Assembly: GCA_977030845.1 (NCBI GenBank)
Contig: OZ365109.1
Span: 15,934,001 to 15,998,000, forward strand
Length of the DNA stretch: 64,000 nt
Direction of reading: 5' to 3'
Source: Fimbriosthenelais zetlandica
Lineage: Eukaryota
Part shown: piece after piece, positions 95-54,800 of the stretch
Layout: each line of letters starts with the position of its first letter
Position numbering within the stretch: the first letter of the stretch is position 1
Translations under genes and position numbers: made by a program
Notes under the pieces: model-generated
Database searches by the model: none
What the model was told of the DNA's origin: nothing
Seen by the model: the letters and a program-made list of their open reading frames with translations, nothing else

Positions 95-465
95 AGTTCC
101 GAGTTTCGCCACTTGATGGCGCCAGTGTTTCATGGACAAATTTAGTTCCGAGTTTGGCCACTGATGGCGCCAGTGTTTCATGGACAAGTTTAGTTTCGAG
201 TTTCGCCATGGGATGGCGCCAGAGTTTCATGGACAAGTTTAGTTTCGAGTTTCGCCACGGGATGGCGACAGTGTCTCACGGACAAATTTAATTCCGAGTT
301 TCGCCACTGATGGCGCCAGTGTCTCATGGACAAATTTAGTTCCCAGTTTCGCCACTGATGCCAGTGTCTCATGACATGGACAAGTTTAGTTCTGAGTTCC
401 GCCACTCTCATGGGCAAACGGCCTTCAGCACTGCATGGTGCCAATGTCTCGTAGACAAATTTCAG
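95..465. repeat. Minisatellite, ~7 copies of a 48-49 bp unit (intron of the PNPLA gene)
   Basis: Unit AGTTCCGAGTTTCGCCACTGATGGCGCCAGTGTTTCATGGACAAATTT starts at 95, 144, 192, 241, 290, 338 and 388, and decays to the right. Confidence 0.9.
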
Positions 466-13948: not shown

Positions 13949-15289
13949 TTAATAGTCTTCATCATCAATATCTGTCACTCGCAGCGATTGCAATGCTTTC
14001 ATTTGTTCTTTGGCCAGGGTCACAACCCCTGAAAGGTCGACGTCTTCCTCAGCTATTCTCAGATACCGACATTTATTCAGATTGGTCCATTCAACCTCGA
14101 GGGGCTCCTGTCTCTTTTTAAACACAACTTTTCCAGAGAAACTGTCATTCTTCCTCAATTTCCGTTTCTCATGAACCTTATTTTCTTTGCTGAAGGTTGG
14201 CGTACTGGGACTTATCTTCTGCTCTTTTTGAAGCACCTCCAATAATTTGTCCATTTTGTTCATCCCCTTACTGAACCCAGGGTTCATCTGCACCCATTTT
14301 CTTAACCTCTCTAAGAAGTCTATCTTTTTACCCATTAATTTCTGGCATTGTATCTCTTCCACATCGAGCAGTACTTGACGACGTTCCTCTGCGCGACCTT
14401 TCACAAGGTCGCCGTCGATGGAACTTCCAGAAATGGAAGGTCGTCGAGCAAGGTGGCGGTTGGTTGAAGGGTTCACCTCAGATCGGTCCTTCTCCCGGCT
14501 TTCCCTCTCCGTAGCATCATGAGAGGAATAACCCAGGGAGGTACCGATACTTCGAGAAGGGTGTATCCCGCGTTCTTCAGTGTTCGACGTTGCAGGACGC
14601 TGTCTCTTTGATGACGTAGCCCCACTCCTGGGAGGCTCACGAACTGCTGACGCAATAGACACTGAATTAGCACGTGGTGTCTTTGGGGAATCAGGAAGCG
14701 TCACAACGTCCTCGAAGACACTATCGAAATCTTGAAATGTAGAACAAGTCTTGGCTCTTTTCAGTGTTTTTTGTACATCCTGTGAGTCATTTCTTAATCG
14801 ATTTAAGCCTACAGCACTGGCTGCTCTGATATTCGAAACGGGCGAACGTCGTGGTGGCGCTGATTTAGTAAGCCTTTCTATCACCTCTCTCTGTTGTCTT
14901 TTCTTTCCCTGACCTTCCATGGGTTTGCCATCAGTGTCTAAGCCATTAGCAGCCATCCTCTGTTCAGCCTGCAGCCTCAAACGTTTGGCAGCAGCGGCTA
15001 TAGTAAAAGCCCCACTAACACTTACTGTGTTGATTTCTGGCTTAAACTTGCCCAGCATCTCCAGCCTCCGGAAATCCTTAATCTCTTCTGCTGTGAGGTA
15101 GGATTTGATCTTAGCCACGTTGGTTTTTAATCTCCTCTGGCTGAGTTTAACCTCGCGGCTCCCCAGTTCAAGAAGTTTCAAGGAGTATTCTTTTTCAAGT
15201 TCAAGAGCAGAGTCTCTCTTCTCGAGCAGCCGCTGTTCTTTCTGGAGCATGCAGACCGCCTGCACCTCCTTGTCTGATCCGTACCTCAT
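13949..15289 (-). CDS. Coiled-coil protein (446 aa, CDS in one exon) with C-terminal CRYLR motif; possibly CCDC190-like
   Basis: Uninterrupted 446-aa ORF with an N-terminal heptad-rich region, a Ser/Arg-rich disordered middle and WTNLNKCRYLRI near the C-terminus. A splice acceptor (ttcaaactgcag) about 60 nt upstream of the ATG implies a non-coding first exon. Family assignment is from memory of the CRYLR motif only. Confidence 0.75.
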   Translation of the reverse strand: MRYGSDKEVQAVCMLQKEQRLLEKRDSALELEKEYSLKLLELGSREVKLSQRRLKTNVAKIKSYLTAEEIKDFRRLEMLGKFKPEINTVSVSGAFTIAAAAKRLRLQAEQRMAANGLDTDGKPMEGQGKKRQQREVIERLTKSAPPRRSPVSNIRAASAVGLNRLRNDSQDVQKTLKRAKTCSTFQDFDSVFEDVVTLPDSPKTPRANSVSIASAVREPPRSGATSSKRQRPATSNTEERGIHPSRSIGTSLGYSSHDATERESREKDRSEVNPSTNRHLARRPSISGSSIDGDLVKGRAEERRQVLLDVEEIQCQKLMGKKIDFLERLRKWVQMNPGFSKGMNKMDKLLEVLQKEQKISPSTPTFSKENKVHEKRKLRKNDSFSGKVVFKKRQEPLEVEWTNLNKCRYLRIAEEDVDLSGVVTLAKEQMKALQSLRVTDIDDEDY

Positions 15290-19848: not shown

Positions 19849-22271
19849 ATGGCATCTCTCAAGTAAGAACCTTCTTCATTCCTCCCCTTAATTAATATTT
19901 CCAAACGTTAAATAGGGGCAATCCATATCAAATCGTCTGATGGCAAAAATAAATCTTCGATGATTTTGATCAAATTGAAAAGAGCCATTGTCTATACCAA
20001 TATTAAAGGGATTATGAACTTTTTTTGAAAAAAAATCCAAATGCATGGGGTCCAGCGCATCACAAAAATTCGAGGTATTTTGGACATTCCTGGAAATTGT
20101 GATTTATGCCCATCTTTAGAGGTTTATCAAATCTGAATGGCTCAATATTTCTTTTTGAAAATCCACACACATGTTGACCAGTACCTTACCCACACATATC
20201 CAGAAGATGGTGAACTTCCCATAATGTGTTACTAAGGTAACTGAGCCTCAAACATGAGCTGTCTACTCATTTATTAGCACAAATACGCCATTTTTCAATG
20301 CCCTTTTCACCAATTTAAAATTAATATTTTGACAAGCTAATTTAGAGGTTGAATTGGGTCACTGTCCTTACCATTTGGATGCATTATCTTGTTTGGGTGT
20401 ATAAGGGACTCTTTGCTAGGGAGGTCTGAAGTTGGCTCAAATTCAAAAATTGGACATATTCAACGCCCCCTGGTGGTATGGCGCCGAGGTAGTATCTATA
20501 CAAATATGCATTTTTCTGAAAGGTCAACATGTACTCCCTCAGTGTCAGAAAAACTGGGATGGTTTTTTCCCCATTTTTACGCAATCCTGGTTTGAATACT
20601 GAGTGTTTTGGGACATTTTTCCCATAGTAGCATATATAATGTAGCCTAATTAGTCCCATGGATTTTCAATGCTAAAATTGATTTTAATACATGGAACATT
20701 CAGATAGTGTCCAATGGTTAAGAAAATCGTGAGTACCATTTTTTTTCTCGGGTTTCACTTGCCACCAGGGGGCGCTTTGTTCCAATATTTTCAATTTGAA
20801 GAATTCGTAAACGTTTCAAATTCACCCCAGCAATTTCTGCATCTGTTTTCCATAAATCAATGAAATCAGATTATAGTTCTTTTAAGATAATTCTCTGAAT
20901 GTTCATCTTGTTGGCAGATAATTAGACAGATAATTAGATGATTCGTGATTGTTTTCCGATAAGAAAACATACACCATAATTATGGTATGGGTGAACCTGG
21001 CCGATTTCCAATCTTTGGGAAATGTTCCAGTTTGATAATATTTTTCAGCAACTTGTTTGAAGAATAAATTGGGACTGTTCGAAAGCTAAATCACATAATG
21101 AGACAATGCCTCATTTACTAAATTAGTACCAAAATGCAAAAATAAAAATATTTGAGCAACTATTATCTTGTGATTAGGCCTACACATAATTAGCTTTGGC
21201 TCCCTTTCTATCCGTGGTTGATGCGTTAAGTCTTTCTTCAATCTGCCAAACTGCTATATATTTTACACCTGATCATGGAATGTGAAGGGGATTAAATAAT
21301 TCTGGTAGCAATTATGAACACATAACCTTTAATGAGGTTTTCACATTGTTGTGCTACCCAGGTTAAACAATTTGATATATTTTTATTATGATATAATAAG
21401 GCCGTTTGGCATGATTCTTGATTTTGGACATTTCCTTCATTTCAGAAACCTTTTGTCTGGATTGCTCAGCTTTATCTTCTTTCTGGGTGTGAGGGGCTGG
21501 GTTCCTAGACGGGATCCCTACTATCACTATGCACCTTACTACATGGTCCACCCCAAGACATCACCAGCTTGTCGTGGCAGCAACCCTTGCTACAACATTG
21601 TCCTTACTTATGTCAGTGATGGATCACTGACCTTTGACAAGGTCTTCAATGAGCAGAAACTCATTGACCACTTCGCCATTGCTGGCTATGACAGGGCTGC
21701 GACCATCGAGGAAGCTCGCATCGCCGCTAGGCATTTCAGGAGAATGTATGGCTACGACTTTACTCACCTGAGAGATGAGGATTTCTTGCGAGGTGTGAGT
21801 TACGGGAAAGACGGCACAAGCTTCAGGCCCTATGTCTTGAGCACTGAGGCTCGTTATCGTTTTTACATGGGCGCCAACGGTGATGAAGCTCAGGTGTTCA
21901 ACAGGCCTATTTCTGATGCAGGATGGCTGCTCGAAGTGTCAAGGGACACACAATCTCGTGGAACTTACAGAGGTGTCATCCCCCGCACAGCCTTTGCGCT
22001 TTACGGTTCCTACATTATCAAGCCATGCGATGAAAGGGGTTGTCATAATGTCCTAAACCCCAGAAATCCAACCGAGGTGATCAAGATCAACTTCTGGTCA
22101 GTGGACTATATGAATGTGGTGAAGGATCCTATCACTTTCAATGGTCTCCACTGTCACGTTGAACACCCTGTTTGGGGACGAGGAAGAGCTCGGGGTTTCC
22201 TGCCAAGGAGAATTGAAGGAACTGAAATCACTGATGGAAGAAACGTTCTTACCTTCCCAGCGATACGATAA
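19849..22271 (+). CDS. Orphan secreted protein (279 aa, 2 exons)
   Basis: Exon 1, 19849-19862 (ATGGCATCTCTCAA|gtaaga), splices to the acceptor ttcatttcag|21446 in frame with the 306-aa ORF. The product MASLKNLLSGLLSFIFFLGVRG|WVPRRDPYY... has a clear signal peptide and ends GRNVLTFPAIR*. Confidence 0.85.
20003..20830. mobile_element. Probable degenerate DNA-transposon derivative in intron 1 of the secreted-protein gene, carrying an inverted pair of CCACCAGGGGGCG motifs
   Basis: Starts ttaaagggattatgaac. Inverted motifs lie at 20464-20476 and 20762-20776. Boundaries are approximate. Confidence 0.4.
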
Positions 22272-23466
22272 TTTCCCAGTGACATTACTACTGAAAACTT
22301 TTTACAAGATTAAGAAGCTTTGTCTAAATGTGTATATATATTCAGTCCCTTCTGACAGACCAATGAAAATGAAATTAACAAGGCCAATTAATGTTATTCA
22401 ACAACTCCAGAATGGATGAATAAAAGAATGATTTATGTTTAAGATTTATTGCTTATACAGGTCCATTATTATTAGGCCCAGGTTTAGGTAAACTTTATCC
22501 ATGGTTTAGATTTATCAAAAGTGAGGATTGGATACAGTTCAATAAGGGTGAAAAGATATAGCGTAAATAAAACATTGAGTGTGGAAAGTCCCTCACAAGG
22601 GATATGGCCAATGAGAGGTCTAATGATCCCTAGCCTTGCTGAATGTATGTATAAGGACAAGATTGCTAAGAGTGACTTTTTTGGGGGATTTTCCCTGCTT
22701 TTTATGCATGAACTGATTTGGGTGACTTACATATTATGGTTAAGTATATATAATATGCACGGTAGCATTTTGATTCAGCGATTGCAAGTTTGAACATAGG
22801 AGTAACAGACATAAACATATTATTTGATCATCAAGGATGCAGCTTAGCAACTTAATATATATGGGCTTCCACAACCCCACGACACCTTGTGTCGGTTAAG
22901 GTGAGTAGTTCTAATACCAACGTTGAACGCGTTTCCTGTCAGAAAAAGCACTGTATAATTATACGGGTGTATTGGGTGGCCGGCTATTATACGATAGCCT
23001 ACAAAAGGAAAAAGTACATAGTAGGCCTATCGGATAAAGTATAGGAATAGAATTCTTCGGTGATTTCTGTCAGATAAACAATCCAACATGTTGGATATGG
23101 TGCACATTATCAGAGTGTCTTACCCCGTTGTTGCATCACAATGTAATACATCCCCTACACTGTAAATCTAAGAATCATTTCAAGGAGCGTGATCTTAGAA
23201 TTTTGATTCTTAATTTCATGCTGTGATTAAACCAAGTTATCTAACATATTCCTTAATATCACTTGATAATCCTTTAGAAGTATTTTAAAACACTGCCTCT
23301 AAATATATTAAAATTACCTCGGGAACATAAATACTGTTTTTGTAACTGTAACATTACTATAAGCAGTGAACCATTTTACCAAATGTTGTCTCGGAAGTAA
23401 CAAAATGTTCTTTACTATATAGGTATGTCCAGTGGATGCTATTGATCTCATACCATATCCGTCTAT

Positions 23467-25119
23467 ATGTATGATCCACGAAAAGGACGCAAGATGAAAG
23501 GACGGAGGATTATAACAAAGATCATTGTTTGTATCTTTATTATCATAGAATGTGTCACTTCTCTAGAACTATACAAAGAAAATATCGACATTGAAGATGA
23601 TTTTAAGATCCACCAGCTCCACTCTGCTCCCATGAAGCAGCTGGGGTTGGACTATAACATAGAGTTCCCCATAGAGAAGTGCTGCCCTATCATGTACATC
23701 TACGCGCAGACCCACAACGCTCCCTACAACTCCACACACCTCCACCATCAATGCTTCGTGGGTGGAAACATCTTTGAAAATGTGGCAATCGTGAAAGCAT
23801 TCTACATTTTCATGAAACCAAACTTTCCAAAATCTAATTGTGTTGAAGACGGGCACAACATGGTGTGTAAAGGAGAGAGGACGTTAGCCTATGCAATGAA
23901 CAGAACCTGGTACTATGTTCTTGGTTATAAATGTGAGGAAAGGAAATCATTAACAATCAATATAAGTCTAAGTCTTGATATTAACAAACCTCTGACGTGT
24001 GAGAAACTTGGGTCTCACTGTTCTAATCGTTATGGCTACAGCCTCACCACGTTCCCCAATCTAAGCGGCCACCGTTCACAAAGTGAAGCACAACAACTCT
24101 TTACGTCCTGCGATCATTTAATTCGGGCCACTAAATGTTACCAGCATGGCCACGAGTTCATGTGTAAGACCATCTTCCAGGAATGTCGTAACGGATCGAT
24201 ATATTTACCGTGTCAGCGAGCATGTCATGATTTTCTCAGCGGATGTGAGGAACCGTTGAGGAAATGGGGACATAACATTACGTGTGGTAACTTCCCACCC
24301 ACCCTGGACCCTGACATCTGCTGGTACAAGCCTGTAGTCTGTCCTCACCTTACGGCCGCACGTAATGGTAACGTATCAACAACAGGCTTCACCTTACATG
24401 ATACATCCACCTACCACTGTCATCCACCATACACTTTACTAGGTTCTCCACTACGGTCATGTAACCAGTCTGGAGTATGGAATGATACTGACCCATCATG
24501 TGAGCTTACAAATAACTCTCCCATATCCCTCAGCAACCACCTTATGATTATCCTGCCTTTGTCAGTTACTGTAACCATCATTTTACTATTGCTGCTTGTA
24601 TCTGTAGTGATTCACCACAGAACCACCATAGTGCTTCTCTATAGGCACAGCTTTTATATGGAGAGCTTAGTGAGGAGATCCAGTAACGTCAAGAAGGTGT
24701 TTATAACATATAGCAGTGACGACAGGGAGATAGTGAGGTCAGTGATTTCCAGTATGACGTCAGAGCTGGGGTCAGGTTGGGAGGTCATCACCTTTGAGAG
24801 AGACTTTGTAGCAGGACGTCCACTTCTGGCATGTATCAATGAGGCGGTATGGGCGAGTCATGCTGTACTCGTGCTACTCACTAATAACTACATCCATAGT
24901 GATTGGTGTGAGTACGAGTTTACCGAAGCCATGACCAGGTCAGCCATAGATGAACAATTTAAACTAATCACTATAATGTTAGACAGTGAGGAGAAGGGGG
25001 GACACATTAAAACTGAGAATCTACCCTATCATCTCAAAACGCTTGTAGACACACGCGTTTATCTCAGATATACAGAGAGATTCTTCTGGAATAAACTACG
25101 TAAAAGTCTCACTGACTAA
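23467..25119 (+). CDS. Type-I receptor, CDS in one exon: signal peptide - Cys-rich N-domain - Frizzled CRD - sushi/CCP - TM - TIR (550 aa)
   Basis: Signal-like KGRRIITKIIVCIFIIIECVTS. Fz CRD cysteine pattern at aa ~178-285 (TFPNLSGHRSQSEA..KCY..FMCKTIFQEC..LPCQRACHDFLSGC..ITCGNFP..C). CCP at aa ~292-345 (CPHL..NG..YHCHPPYTLLGSPLRSCNQSGVW..PSC). TM at aa ~359-382. TIR at aa ~409-548 (VFITYS, ERDFVAG, SHAVLVLLTNNYIHSDWCEYEF, FWNKLRKSL). Confidence 0.92.
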   Translation: MYDPRKGRKMKGRRIITKIIVCIFIIIECVTSLELYKENIDIEDDFKIHQLHSAPMKQLGLDYNIEFPIEKCCPIMYIYAQTHNAPYNSTHLHHQCFVGGNIFENVAIVKAFYIFMKPNFPKSNCVEDGHNMVCKGERTLAYAMNRTWYYVLGYKCEERKSLTINISLSLDINKPLTCEKLGSHCSNRYGYSLTTFPNLSGHRSQSEAQQLFTSCDHLIRATKCYQHGHEFMCKTIFQECRNGSIYLPCQRACHDFLSGCEEPLRKWGHNITCGNFPPTLDPDICWYKPVVCPHLTAARNGNVSTTGFTLHDTSTYHCHPPYTLLGSPLRSCNQSGVWNDTDPSCELTNNSPISLSNHLMIILPLSVTVTIILLLLLVSVVIHHRTTIVLLYRHSFYMESLVRRSSNVKKVFITYSSDDREIVRSVISSMTSELGSGWEVITFERDFVAGRPLLACINEAVWASHAVLVLLTNNYIHSDWCEYEFTEAMTRSAIDEQFKLITIMLDSEEKGGHIKTENLPYHLKTLVDTRVYLRYTERFFWNKLRKSLTD

Positions 25120-26392: not shown

Positions 26393-29300
26393 CTAGGTAG
26401 CAGTATGGACTTGTGCCCCTCCCATAACTGAGGTGATATCGGACATGGTGTCAAAATAACTTCCCATTCCCGCTGATGTAACACGACTTAGTCCAGTCCT
26501 TGGAGGAGCATACCTGACCCATGGTGCCACATTGATCCTGGTCTCTAACATTGACTTGGCCTGGGCATAAACAGCCGATCCTTCACACCATTCCAGTGCT
26601 TTCTCAAGGGTAAGTTCAGGATACTGGGTAACATCTTGACCATGGGTTTTCACAAAGGACCAGAAGGAATTTAGCTCAGCATTTTCGATTAGCACTGACT
26701 CAGCAAGGGCATAGTCCTCTAAAAGGTCATCCATTAACCCAGCAGCACATTTAGCAGCAATGAAAGTCAGGTTGCACAATGAGTATGAAATGCAGGATGG
26801 ATTGGATCCAAGAATGGATGCAGTAGGAAGTTCACACAACTTAGCATGGTTAAAGTACACACAACCGTTCCTTGGGTTTGCAGCATACAATGGCTGAGGT
26901 GAAAGGGACCTCCCGGGATATCTATCATGCATTTCACATGTGAAGTAGTTAGCAATTAGACTGTAGTATTTTTCCTTCAGATAGTCTTCATGTCCAATGT
27001 ATCGCTTAACGATCGCCTCTGCCATCTGTCTATCAGCTATGGTAAGGACATTGTGTCCATTCGTTGAGGAATCGACAAGGTGATCACCAAGGTCATGCCG
27101 CAGCTTTGAGAAGATACTATGAGGGAAACGCTTTGTTGGAGGTGGATTAACAAGTAACACTGACTGCAGTACTTCATCATCAGCAGAGAGAATATCAAGC
27201 AAATGAGGTTCACTCAAACCACGTCTGGACAAATGGAGCAATGACAAAACATGGGCAACCAGGGTTTTGCCATGATCAAGTTCCAGCTTTTCCAGAAACT
27301 TCAAAAGCATTTCGGCTTGGTCGTTGCTGAATGCTGTGAGTTTCTCAGTAGAAGACCAATGGCAGCTCCTTTCAAAGAGTAATTGCAGTCTGTACATGTT
27401 TGAACATTGGCCAGACCCATCGATAGATGCTATGACAATCTGATCTAATTGGTTCGGTTGAAGAGTTCGGTGTATGCTTCCAAACTTGCCAACAAGTACG
27501 TCATGAGTTTGCACTTTATCTAGGGGTAAGATATGCAGAGTTTGACTTGCTTGCATAAGATCAGTTACAAGTTCCTTGTTTCGATCTTGAACAGAAACAA
27601 CCATTTTTACATGTCTAGGTAGTTCTGTTGGCACCCAGGTTTTCGGAGACCCATTTCTCAGGTCATCAATTGAATCAAAGAAGAAAAAGAGAGGTTCCTC
27701 TACTGAAGCTTTGGAGAGCAGGTTTTTGAAAATCCCTCCCAGGTTCTCCAAATCGAGACATTTTTCTGCCTGTAGCATTATTTCGTACGACTTCTTTGTT
27801 GAACATGTAATTCGTAACTGCTGACTAACACTTCTTAGGAAATCTGATGTTGTGAGCTTCTTCTGCAGAGTACAAAACCTGGTAATTATGACAGGGTTGA
27901 TGTCATCTCTTTCCTCAGAGATCTCGGAGAGTTGGGTGATGGTAGCTGCCATAAGTGACGTCTTCCCACAGCCTCTCCCTCCATGCACTATCAAGGGACT
28001 GTTGGAATCATCCGCTATATAATGAATGATCTTGTGGACAAGGGTATCCCTCCCGAAGAACATATCAGCCTTGGACAAACAATACCGAGCTTGACTTGCA
28101 ATATCGACAACTAGATCTTCAGGGTAGTCTTCTCTGTCAGAAGCTGAGAGCAGTCGTGATTTCATTTCCTTCAGCACTGAAGCTGTTAAATGATTCAAGT
28201 AGTCAAGATGGGTAGACTCATTTATACCAAAGGGACTCCAGTTGATAGAATACTTTTTGCATTTCACCTTCATGCTTTTGAAACGTCTTTTCAAACCATC
28301 TAGACGCTTCTTCAGTTTCATGTCTCTGCTGTGCTCTTTCCGATTGACATCGACATAAAGGCTGATAATCTTTTGGCTGGCACTGTGATTGTCTGCCACC
28401 TTCAGAGGACTGAGCTGTGGTATGTTTCTGATAATACATAAAGTCCTGCTGGAGACAGTAGATTCATTATCGAACATCAATGACACCTGACATCCGAATG
28501 GAGAGATCTCCCATTTATCTTTTCGTTCTTGTTTAAAGCCATAACTCTGGTCAACAGCATCTTTCATGATATGAAAAAGATGAGACTCAGTGGACGACCA
28601 CCTGGCCGACATTAACTTCCGTTCATGCTTGTCTGAAATAATAATGATTTAAAAGGTTTTGCAATGTCAAATTAGGGGATAAACTTAAGCCTGTTACAGT
28701 ACTCCACTGCTGCGATTTTGCTTGCATTATTTCTGAGACAAACTGATGCATATATGTCACAATGAATAAGGTACCAGTGGAGGACGGTCTTAAGGCCTTG
28801 GACTCTTTCACCAGTCCACCGTTGATAAATTTCATTGCGACACAAGCATCACCTTTGTCGCAGTAGCGTTGCAAGAAAAATCGCAGCAGTGGAATACTGC
28901 TTTAATTCCAGATTTACCCTTGCTATATTTTCTATGAAGTCAATTTTAAATTCTATATTAACTATACTGACCTGGTGAAACAATTAATGGCTCGTTTGGC
29001 ACAAATCGTCGTAGTCTGTATGCTGGAGGCATTGCATTTTCATCTAAGACATACCAACGCTCCACCGTCTCTCTGGCATCTTCATCCTCAATAGAAGATA
29101 GAATGTACTCATGTTCATATTTCTCGATGTACTCAGGCAAACCGGGCGTTCCATATTTATTTGTTAGAATATGAACGACACATGGAACTCCTTCGATTGT
29201 CTGTTCTCTACATCTTTGCATTTCCTCCAGACAAATCCTAGAGAATCCTTTATCAAAAACAGAGGCATCAGCTTGTCCCCATCCTAGGTCAACCGCCATG

Positions 29301-30147
29301 AAAGCAATGCCATTTTGATCACATATTTCTCGGATCTTTGGGTAAGTGTCCCTCATAAGGAAGTTCCTTTCAGCTTTGGTGTCACAGAAAGTGCAAGAGA
29401 TGAAGAGACGAAGCATTTTCTTGGGGACTTTTGAAGATGCTTGGAGATCTCCTCTCAGCAAGGCAGTTATGGCATCTTCAGATGACATCTCTTCTAACCG
29501 AGCATGGATAGCATCTTGCTTTAGTTTTCTTCTGGAATCCTGCATAAGTTAAATCATCAATTTGTATTACAGTTAAAACCCGGTATTAAATTTAAAATAC
29601 ACACTGAAGATAAAGATACAGATATAGATAGAAAAGTAAAGCATTGCCAAGTAAAATAAAGCATTAGGCCTACCTCCATATTTTTGACAGAAGCCCCATC
29701 CTCATCTCTCCAGTCCATGAACAATTTATTACCATTTGGACACGTTGGTCTCCAATAGGAGTATTTATATAACCCATCTTCACATAACTCTTTACCAATG
29801 CTCGGTTCCATGTTCTTCAAATTATCCATCAGCCAAAGCAAGTATATCTTCCCCTTCCCCTTGGGCTCCACTTGTGAATTGCCTGGTAAGGTACTTCCAC
29901 CATTTTTACTTTTGTCCTGAAAATCATTCCTTCTTGTTCTGATATTGCCTGTGCCTTCTGTATTCATTGGAAGGCCTCCACATTCCTCTTCCACATATGG
30001 ATTTGTATTTTCTTCCATCTCTGGTAGTTTTCCTTCGCGGATCATGGTGTCCATCCTGGTCCGGTGTCGACGCATCATCCGGTCAAGTTCCCATTCATGA
30101 AACATACCCAGCCGGTCAGTGACCTGGCTCTTCCATGTCCTAAACAT
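26393..30147 (-). CDS. NWD1/2-related STAND NTPase: death-domain-like N-terminus - DUF4062 - NACHT - helical region, no WD40 (~1093 aa, 3 coding exons)
   Basis: Exons 30147-29674, 29539-28972 and 28632-26393 join in frame (GAG|gtaggc..cag|GAT; CCAG|gtcagt..ttcag|AC). DUF4062 motif RLFISCTFCDTKAERNFLMRDTYPKIREIC..AVDLGWG; Walker A VHGGRGCGKTSLMA; Walker B LFFFFDSIDDL; NWD-type helical motifs RRGLSEPHLLDILSADDEVL, RFPHSIFSKLRHDL and FNHAKLCELP. Confidence 0.9.
28685..28905. mobile_element. TTAA-flanked MITE, family B copy 1 (intron 2 of the NACHT gene)
   Basis: Inverted repeats ccactgctgcgattttgcttgca / tgcaagaaaaatcgcagcagtgg, with TTAA at both outer ends. The internal cacaagcatc(a/g)cctttgtcgcag is shared with 50236-50453. 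Confidence 0.75.
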
Positions 30148-51800: not shown

Positions 51801-54800
51801 TAGTATTTAACCTAACCCTAAACTTCACCCTAACCTAACCCCTAAAACATATAACATATAATCCCAAAAGACCTAAACCTGACCTTCGTATCGCAGGGGC
51901 CTCGCGAGACTTGGCCGCCATCTTGGATCGGGCCCCTAAAGTGTAGTTGAGCCCATGATATATCGTGCTAATTTAGTACTTTTTGTACAGATATCAGATA
52001 AAAATCACCAATATTTTCTTTAAAACTCCAGCCTCCTGCCTCCTGGTCAGTAGCAAAAGATAAAGCGCCGATAATCATTCCTGTAGATGGGTAGGCATTG
52101 ACAATAATATCTCTTTGCCCATTCCTCAGCGTGATCGGCTGGGGGAAAAGAGTATCAGCACAAAATCAAATAAGGCCCAGAGGAAGAAATTACCGATCCT
52201 ATGTATAACTGCAATTTATACATTTAATACTTTAGGGTGCGTTTCTACTGCGGCGACAGCCACACGTACGCGACAATGTCGCACGACAATGACTGTGGCG
52301 CGAAAAGGTGCGACAGCCTGCTCCATTGTCGCTCTGTGTAGACGACACTGTCGCTCGACAGGCTACTCAACTGAAGCCTCCACTCATTTCTCTACGACAA
52401 CTGCCTCCATTGAGGCGACAAACCTGGCGACAAGCCGACCACAAGATTTTGCAGCGACAAATTTGTCGTCGGCATCTATCGACAAAGCCACGACAGCATT
52501 TTTTGTCGTTTCACTGTCGTTTACACCAGCGACAAGGTAGCGACAAGGCTTGTCGCCGCAGTAGAGTTTCACCGATATGGAGTGCCTATACATAACAATT
52601 TCTCACCATGATATTAGTAAGCGTCTCCCACTCAATAATATAGGAAGTAGGGTCACTGCACGAGAGGAGATCAGCGGACCTAGTTACCGTGTCTAATATT
52701 TCCTCATCTCCGCTAATCGGATCCTTTAATTTGATAGTAGCTTTTCTCTTCTCAATGACAAACTCAAATCTCTGGGAACGTGTATCCCCGACCTTCTCCG
52801 TCAAAATAATAGTGGCTGTATGACATGCCTGCAACAGCAGAAGTAACATCAATCATTCCTTAGTCAATTCGACCTGGTATCGTTTATGTCCTCATTGTTT
52901 CATTGCTAAAGCAAATACAACTTTTATGAACCACATTTTATGATAACTAATTACATTTTCATATACAATGTAATTGAAAATGATTACATGCCTGAACTGT
53001 GAATGGCAGCCGATTATCTCTCATCCTAAGCCAAAGGTTGCTAAACGCATCAGTGTCTGGGGGAGTTGTAATGGTGTAATACCTGTCTGTACAAACATTC
53101 ATAACACCTTGAAGATTATTGATAATTGGAGCATATACGTACAATACATATAACTATATGATACCATTATATAATAAGATATAATAGTTGGTCAACATTT
53201 ACAAAAAGACAGTGTAAAACGCGAGTGACAATTTTATAAGCTGAAATGTCAACGGAAATTTTAATAAATTGCCATTCATGTTCCAGTACCTTGTACTCGA
53301 GAGAAATCCCACAGACCATCTTCTTTATCAGTCATAATTCCTATAGCATGGACGGGGTGCTTGTACGTGTCGCTAGTGGCATCCCATGACAACATTGTGG
53401 CATAACTCACTGTGTTTCCAAGACCCAAGGATATCAGGTTGTTTTCCCAGCTCACCCACATGTATACACCTTAAATCGTCCCGAGCAAATGGTCATATTA
53501 GAAGCTAGGATATCATTATTTTTTAATCGTAAGAAAAAAATACTTTCATCTAATAAAATGGGTCTACCTCAGTAACACAACAAGAAGTCATTGCTGTTTC
53601 ATTAGATTTCGATGCTTAACAAGTGTCAAGTTATTTCACTCAGTTACAAACCATTATCGCCATTTAAGAAGTTGCCCTCCATTTGATCTTTCACGTTTCC
53701 GTCTATGTAAGATTTGATAACGGAATTCCCACCGTTCTGGTTGATCACTATTTCATAACAGTCATACGCAAGAATACCAACAAACTCGCAGAGAATAATG
53801 TGAACATCAGTAGAACACTTGAGCTTGAACACAAGGCTTTTCTCTTCGCCTCCAACACTCAGCCATTTTGAGTAGGTACTATCCCCCTTCTGTGTTGTTA
53901 TCAGTGTTCCCTTTCCTGTGGGGATTAGAATCTCCGAATAACATTATGAAAGAAATCATTAAAAGTCATGCAAACCAACAAAATGGAAGACACTTTCCCA
54001 AACACGTTCAAAGAGGCCTGAAATATAATAAATTCTAATCATAAACATACCCATTCTGCGAGAGAATTTCCAATCACTTTGGCTCTCAGCAGAGGCAGGT
54101 GTTCCCAGGGAGACCGTATTAACGGGTATCATATTATCAACAAAAACATACATGACAGAACGTCGCTGGTTACCACCACCCTTCAGCACTGTGATACTGG
54201 ATTCTGTCCATTCAACTGTGATGGTAGTAAATCTATGGCAGTGTACTAACAAGGGTGTTCTACTTCGGTAAATGGTTGAATTGGAAGAAAGTGGGTACCT
54301 GGAATGGAACAATGCTATTTTGAACAACAATGCTAAGTTGAACAGCAAGTGGAATGTAAGATTTGTTAGGCCTACTTTGCTTTGTCTAAATAGCCAACCT
54401 TGGGCTAATGTATTGTAAATGACTACTTGAGCTAATGTTGTATTGAAAATGACTACTTTACCACCGAGTCTTAAATAAAGATGTGTATCTTGTATCTTTT
54501 TAGTAAGGTCTGTCGGTGGAAGACAGCCGCGGATTTAGGGTGGGGGGGGGGGGGGGGGAGGGGGGCGCTCACACCCCCTATTTTTTGAGGGTTAACTTTA
54601 CCCTAACCCTAGGTTTTCAGCCTAGGGTCCACCCTAAACCTAACCCGGTGCCCCCCTCCCTTTGGAAAAATCCTGGATCCGCCCCTGGAAGAGTAATTAT
54701 GATACTAACTTGGTGATGGTAGAATTCCCATCAGAGAGGGAGATGACAAAAGCGGAGGACTTGTCCCACTCGTCAGAGGCTAGCTCATGACCAAGGTAAA

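Follow-up and report, generated by a model that had tools for sequence, protein, structure and literature searches.

Membrane receptors with a Toll/interleukin-1 receptor (TIR) domain are known with ectodomains of leucine-rich repeats (LRRs) or immunoglobulin (Ig) domains, and invertebrates often combine the TIR domain in new ways. A stretch of 64,000 nucleotides from contig OZ365109.1 of Fimbriosthenelais zetlandica (assembly GCA_977030845.1, positions 15,934,001 to 15,998,000, forward strand; hereafter the window) raises the question of whether a single-exon gene, in which a TIR domain follows a Frizzled-type (Fz) cysteine-rich domain (CRD) and a sushi domain, encodes a working receptor, and of which kind. 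On balance, we read the window gene from its sequence as functional, and as belonging to a lineage-restricted family of type I membrane receptors, of the Toll-like receptor (TLR) and interleukin-1 receptor (IL-1R) type and probably innate immune. What is new here, as far as we have found, is the ectodomain cassette carried on a single-pass TIR receptor.

The domain architecture is the foundation of this reading. An earlier note on this DNA had described a signal-like N-terminus, an N-terminal domain (N-domain), the Fz cysteines, a complement control protein (CCP, or sushi) domain, a transmembrane helix and a TIR domain, and that description proved correct throughout. The combination of Fz, sushi and TIR in one open reading frame (ORF) is confirmed by Pfam matches that all exceed their gathering thresholds: TIR_2 at 53.3 bits (threshold 28; residues 411-509) and TIR at 45.3 bits (threshold 21.3), which together cover residues ~411-512; Fz at 52.8 bits (threshold 32.1; residues 183-278); and Sushi at 30.4 bits (threshold 20.7; residues 292-345), the two ectodomain calls thereby holding up against hidden Markov model thresholds. 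The reported absence of LRR and Ig domains likewise stands, as neither family occurs among the Pfam matches of the window protein at E-values up to 1; LRR_8 and LRR_4 are clearly detected in the many intronless LRR-TLRs of the same genome. Hydropathy analysis (Kyte-Doolittle) returns two membrane-length stretches, the second with windows above 1.6 starting at residues 353-374, and only one of them follows the ectodomain, so there is no seven-helix domain. The ten N-X-S/T sequons are confined to residues 88-349, and because the two hydrophobic stretches are thus accompanied by sequons that lie entirely outside the membrane, the predicted topology fits that of a type I membrane glycoprotein. The signal stretch was called from hydropathy; the paralogs have canonical hydrophobic N-termini. 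Translation of the window ORF could in fact begin at a second in-frame ATG, at 23494 (M10), and the start of one paralog (L003) lies further downstream than that of the window ORF.

The identity of the N-domain required revision, given that the earlier note had compared it with the N-termini of LGR/GRL101-like G protein-coupled receptors. The separate domain of ~140 amino acids (aa) that the note had proposed is real: modeled on its own (residues 33-172), it folds confidently into a beta-sandwich, with a predicted local distance difference test score (pLDDT) of 91.8 and a predicted template modeling score (pTM) of 0.85. Its affinities, however, lie with GPR180 and TMEM145. The Pfam family TMEM145_N (PF21892) matches 25 of 30 family N-domains, and no other Pfam family does so consistently; the window copy scores 25.7 bits, under the gathering threshold of 28.1, and bona fide TMEM145_N domains in the same genome reach up to 100 bits. 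Aligned by hhalign, the family N-domain profile and a TMEM145_N ORF of this genome (100 bits) match with a probability of 96.1% (E-value 3e-9), and have in common a double-cysteine strand and a C-x-G-x-R strand. The top rows of a search of AFDB clusters are named 'GPR180-like N-terminal domain' and 'Transmembrane protein 145' (E-values 4e-6 to 3e-5, template modeling scores 0.55-0.67). Among solved structures, a sequence search with the N-domain gave no match, and a fold search gave generic jelly-roll or GOLD matches, all with Z below 8; the weaker fold neighbors comprise TMED/p24 GOLD domains, collagenase collagen-binding domains, PirA and calpain. The same set of fold neighbors is reported for the crystal structure of the GPR180 N-terminal domain (PMC11605061); that structure, 9FOW (PMC11605061), is itself not among the solved-structure matches listed for the N-domain. 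We therefore read the N-domain as a divergent member of the GOLD-type domains found in GPR180 and TMEM145, and not as an LGR/GRL101-like N-terminus. Elsewhere in the genome, locus L028 holds a 410-aa open frame (829-2061 on the minus strand, equivalent to G000:C19:32698040-32699272) in which two bona fide TMEM145_N domains lie in tandem, and TMEM145_N exons are clustered on contig 38 (G000:C38:6.32-6.33 Mb); by these matches, multiplication in this genome extends to the GOLD-like module itself.

The remaining modules are more conventional in their closest relatives. The Fz cysteines of the window protein (178, 185, 224, 233, 240, 249, 253, 260, 273, and 285), together with four sushi cysteines and W338, are invariant or nearly so among the 15-28 family members compared; within the sushi domain the conserved positions are C292, C318, C332, C345, and W338, all of them invariant except C318. 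In sequence searches of the PDB, the Fz domain is closest to the FZD4 CRD (E-value 5e-8, all cysteines aligned), the sushi domain to factor B, C2, and CR2, and the TIR domain to TLR15 and TLR2 (E-value 5e-10), followed by TLR1, TLR6, and TLR10. The TIR motifs are FITYSS (box 1), RDFVAGRP (box 2, the BB loop), then WCEYE, and FFWNKL (box 3). A model of the whole ectodomain (316 residues, pLDDT 90.4) has a pTM of 0.84, which suggests that its three modules are held in a fixed mutual arrangement, and a structure search with it matched the CRDs of corin, CPZ, frizzled, and smoothened. Three AFDB entries (A0A6P4YBG2, C3ZHM5, and C3YFM6), which we take to be amphioxus proteins, align weakly across the whole three-domain model (E-values 9e-12 to 8e-7, template modeling scores 0.24-0.32), and may hold a similar run of domains in another context.

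The earlier note had proposed a new receptor class, a proposal that survives in part. We found no published description of a TIR domain joined to an Fz domain in full-text literature searches, outside the coverage of which lay the main bivalve TIR survey; on the other hand, the gene is not singular. Scanning the genome (447 Mb, 79 contigs) with a profile of the three-domain cassette revealed 19 cassette loci (Table 1), all within ORFs that continue into the transmembrane helix and TIR domain, and at least three further assemblies contain relatives. Outside the family, this profile met only lone Fz domains, in frizzled-like ORFs of ~600 aa, or lone sushi repeats. Fz, Sushi, and TIR were present in all 15 members that were first aligned. 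The recently amplified subfamily L014-L018 is distinguished by a threonine-rich repeat within the sushi region (units like TAVTTTD) as well as by a long CRD insert; several copies in this cluster are N-truncated, and one has an N-terminus of GGREGG-type repeats.

Table 1. Position of the window gene, its predicted parts and its copies in the genome (positions without a contig are those of the window).
Feature	Position	Strand	Remarks
Complete single-exon coding sequence (CDS)	23467..25119	+	550 aa + stop, one uninterrupted ORF
Signal-peptide-like hydrophobic stretch, ~residues 12-33	23500..23565	+	Kyte-Doolittle windows >1.6 starting at residues 12-19
N-domain, residues 33-172, read as GOLD-like beta-sandwich (GPR180/TMEM145 N-terminal type), six cysteines	23563..23982	+	
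Frizzled-type CRD, residues ~176-288, ten conserved cysteines	23992..24330	+	Pfam Fz
One sushi/CCP domain, residues 292-345	24340..24501	+	Pfam Sushi
Transmembrane helix, residues ~358-383	24538..24615	+	Kyte-Doolittle maximum 2.91 (window 360-378)
TLR-type TIR domain, residues ~408-547	24688..25107	+	Pfam TIR and TIR_2
Possible 3' splice acceptor, short mixed pyrimidine-rich stretch ending CAG	23419..23432	+	34 nt before ATG
Copy of the window gene	contig 27		85% identical
Copy of the window gene (L004)	C1:68.6 Mb		61% identical
Tandem copies	contig 19		four
Single copies	contigs 10 and 13; contig 1 at 49.5 and 65.6 Mb		
Recently amplified cluster (L014-L018)	G000:C1:67.85-69.69 Mb		same build

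Beyond this genome, when 1.84 billion representatives were searched exhaustively with a profile, at least 18 full-length clusters of the family appeared among the best 150 matches, which were those inspected and among which multi-sushi proteins were abundant; the multi-Fz matches had no TIR domain. The ten clusters that were looked up all derive from ENA assemblies or from one Logan run, and none has a protein name. Relatives were traced to ERZ25767047, ERZ26222911 and run ERR14368249, always as a full-length single ORF, and one ERZ26222911 contig holds four copies within ~20 kb. In ERR14368249 the relatives lie on two contigs; one of these (L023), the ends of which were read, has no poly(A) and retains a splice-acceptor-like site. 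A word-indexed protein search recovered only four relatives, even with a 28-sequence profile, and a feature search of the ESM Atlas gave no usable match. By HSP70 similarity the window genome falls among the spiralians, with nemertean, brachiopod and mollusc matches at 77-78%. The family appears lineage-restricted, and because it sits in unannotated assemblies only, current protein databases miss it. In a maximum-likelihood tree there are two deep clades (support 98/95 each), and since all four genomes are represented in each, the family must have had at least two genes before these species split. In ERZ25767047, two proteins, P0047 (L025 10001-12640) and P0155, have two and three tandem cassettes, respectively, before a single transmembrane helix and TIR domain, and this duplication as a block indicates that the GOLD-like/Fz/sushi cassette behaves as one evolutionary unit.

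Selection on these genes was gauged by the ratio of nonsynonymous to synonymous substitution rates (dN/dS, Nei-Gojobori method) in nine paralog pairs, four of which were split by domain. The ratio over the whole protein is 0.20-0.39 in the nine pairs and, in the four, is below one (0.17-0.62) in each domain wherever dS is unsaturated; in the pair of window gene and L004, dS is saturated for three domains. Compared with its 85%-identical copy, the window gene has a ratio of 0.24 overall and 0.17-0.32 per domain. Ratios of 0.2-0.4 that are low in every domain indicate that the protein is kept intact by selection, and we regard them as good, if indirect, evidence for selection on the whole protein, ectodomain and TIR together.

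How such a receptor might work can be sketched by analogy with TLRs and IL-1 receptors. The GOLD-like domain, CRD and sushi domain may act as one ligand-binding cassette, given that none of these outer domains occurs in the family without the other two, that they are predicted to pack, and that some relatives have duplicated them as a block. On binding ligand, two or more receptors would cluster, the assembled TIR domains would nucleate TIR adaptors via TIR-TIR contacts, and NF-kB-type signaling would follow; this mechanism of signaling by TIR clustering is one that we infer. Innate immune recognition is probably the most likely role, because the family shows tandem, lineage-specific expansions beside an expanded repertoire of intronless LRR-TLRs. 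Several observations weigh against this account. The immune role is based solely on the expansion pattern and on analogy, and the packing of the cassette is judged from pTM alone. The exact window protein has no other record in protein collections. Lastly, the position of the BB-loop proline, which is critical in TLR2 and TLR4, is occupied by alanine in the window copy, and by P, A, V, or S across the family.

This last substitution is compatible with a TIR domain that does not signal like that of a TLR, acting instead as SIGIRR does, as a decoy or negative regulator, or cleaving NAD as SARM1 does, an alternative that we consider distinctly improbable even though many members have another residue in place of the BB-loop proline. 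The best solved matches of the domain are signaling TLR TIRs, as opposed to SARM1 or bacterial TIRs, and the Thoeris ThsB TIR model is matched by just two of 15 members, weakly. The glutamate of the WCxxE motif (E484), which is invariant across the family and presumably equivalent to the catalytic glutamate of TIR NADases, might be taken to favor NAD cleavage; however, the same motif is found in the aligned TIRs of TLR15 and TLR2, and since TLR TIRs carry this glutamate it does not discriminate. It is highly unlikely, in our view, that the gene is silent or decaying, whether as an ORF without a transcript or as a copy on its way to becoming a pseudogene. A silent gene would accord with the lack of another record of the exact protein, and decay is evidently at work elsewhere in the family, in which fragments and truncated copies exist beside the intact window copy: two degraded window-type copies with stop codons lie at G000:C1:65.90-65.95 Mb (L013; fragments matching residues 9-116 and 477-550 at 65-82% identity), and the contig 13 copy and copies at C1:67.8-69.7 Mb are truncated, the former N-terminally. 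The window copy, by contrast, is intact across 550 codons with all structural cysteines kept, and its dN/dS against the 85%-identical paralog stays below 0.33 in every domain.

The CRD invites a further interpretation, put forward in the earlier note, that the receptor binds Wnt, lipid or sterol: the CRD, perhaps with the GOLD-like domain, would link a lipidated Wnt or a sterol to the TIR domain, or the protein would serve as a Wnt sink in development. This was an inference only, and we rate it, too, as distinctly unlikely. Although the CRD is a true Fz domain and is closest to that of FZD4, its identity to any Frizzled CRD is low, and the family has a four-residue deletion before the ninth cysteine, where FZD4 has FGFA before WP, in a loop that we take to line the palmitoleate (lipid) groove of Frizzled CRDs; it is on account of this deletion that Wnt or lipid binding is given a low probability. 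Nineteen fast-diverging, tandemly expanded copies would also be unusual for a developmental receptor, and the genome has separate frizzled-like ORFs. Nevertheless, the cassette unites two kinds of module, each of which handles Wnt in other proteins, and the pairing of GOLD domain and CRD is intriguing because Wntless, a GOLD-domain seven-transmembrane protein, contacts Wnt through its GOLD domain (PMC11605061).

Returning to the reading of a TLR/IL-1R-type receptor, comparison with known systems makes clear both what is familiar and what is not. Toll-like receptors have the same type I topology, with a single transmembrane helix followed by a cytoplasmic TIR domain with boxes 1-3; the TLRs of this genome are likewise intronless, and likewise form a multigene family with tandem expansion; and the TIR domain of the window protein is closest to those of vertebrate TLR1/2/6/10/15. 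Unlike TLRs, the window protein is without LRRs, having an ectodomain of ~320 aa made of three unrelated modules, and its TIR domain is just 20-30% identical to those of the TLRs in its own genome. The IL-1 receptor family, like the Ig-TIR receptors known from cnidarians and from sponges (the latter mentioned in PMC8242945), similarly combines a non-LRR ectodomain, one transmembrane helix and a TIR domain, from which it follows that LRRs are not the only binding modules with which a TIR tail can function; Ig domains are, however, present there and absent here. Frizzled, Smoothened, sFRP/sizzled, ROR/MuSK, corin, and carboxypeptidase Z have the same Fz domain with all ten cysteines, yet none of them joins the CRD to a TIR domain, and the window family differs from FZD4 by the deletion noted above. 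With the GOST proteins GPR180 and TMEM145 it has the N-domain in common, as judged by Pfam TMEM145_N and AFDB models, but in GOST proteins (GPR180, TMEM145, TMEM87, and Wntless) there is a seven-helix domain, whereas the window protein has the GOLD-like domain ahead of its CRD and sushi domain, in a receptor that crosses the membrane once. The lineage-specific TIR proteins of amphioxus, sea urchins and bivalves follow the same pattern of a TIR domain recombined with other modules and expanded; no Fz-containing one was found among them in the literature searches.

The origin of the intronless gene can be narrowed by the same comparisons. The single-exon coding sequence that the earlier note had observed holds for the window gene and for every relative examined; the note had gone on to suggest birth by retroposition, or by fusion onto an intronless TLR tail. 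Neither proposal is sustained. An intronless coding sequence is the state of all family members in four genomes, as well as of the host genome's LRR-TLRs, and the window gene and its closest paralog, the contig 27 copy, are 81% identical across ~370 nt of non-coding DNA upstream of the ATG. This similarity in upstream non-coding sequence leaves retroposition unsupported and indicates duplication at the DNA level. In turn, the low identity between the family TIR and the TIRs of the genome's LRR-TLRs gives no sign of a recent graft. A non-coding upstream exon of the window gene is possible, with a candidate acceptor (Table 1) immediately ahead of the ORF; the word CAGTGGATG recurs in paralog L003 and in L023, a relative from another species, in both cases upstream of the ORF, and also close to the N-terminal fragment that remains of the degraded copy L013. 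Finally, between the window gene and L004, the TIR domain has a dS of 0.49 while the ectodomain dS is saturated, which suggests that gene conversion has homogenized the TIR tail between the two.

Of the neighboring genes in the window, one encodes an NWD1/NPHP3-type NACHT ATPase (Pfam families HTH_NWD1, NPHP3_N, and NACHT) and lies tail-to-tail with the receptor gene, at 26393-28612 on the minus strand, accompanied by ORFs at 28958-29545 and 29557-30147 on the same strand. The idea that the NACHT gene and the receptor form a two-part module was rejected, since the seven NACHT paralogs adjoin no other member of the receptor family. Two long ORFs, at 13949-15289 on the minus strand (446 aa) and 21351-22271 on the plus strand (306 aa), have no Pfam match. 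A short ORF at 53959-54348 on the minus strand has a sub-threshold match to a farnesoic acid O-methyltransferase domain (23.7 vs. 24.2 bits), and is probably an exon.

It is unlikely that the cassette senses a lipid-modified ligand, be it a lipid or lipoprotein of microbial origin or a Wnt-type protein of the animal itself, and drives TIR signaling directly; if this were true, lipid recognition in this lineage could lead to NF-kB without the involvement of LRRs, or Wnt would be linked directly to TIR. Irrespective of ligand, the family places a GPR180/TMEM145-type GOLD domain outside the seven-helix proteins and locks it to a CRD, a pairing that may help to explain the ligand of this poorly understood domain. 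More broadly, the family would constitute a third ectodomain solution for TIR signaling, besides LRR and Ig, and offers a concrete candidate for sensing something, possibly hydrophobic, that TLRs do not.

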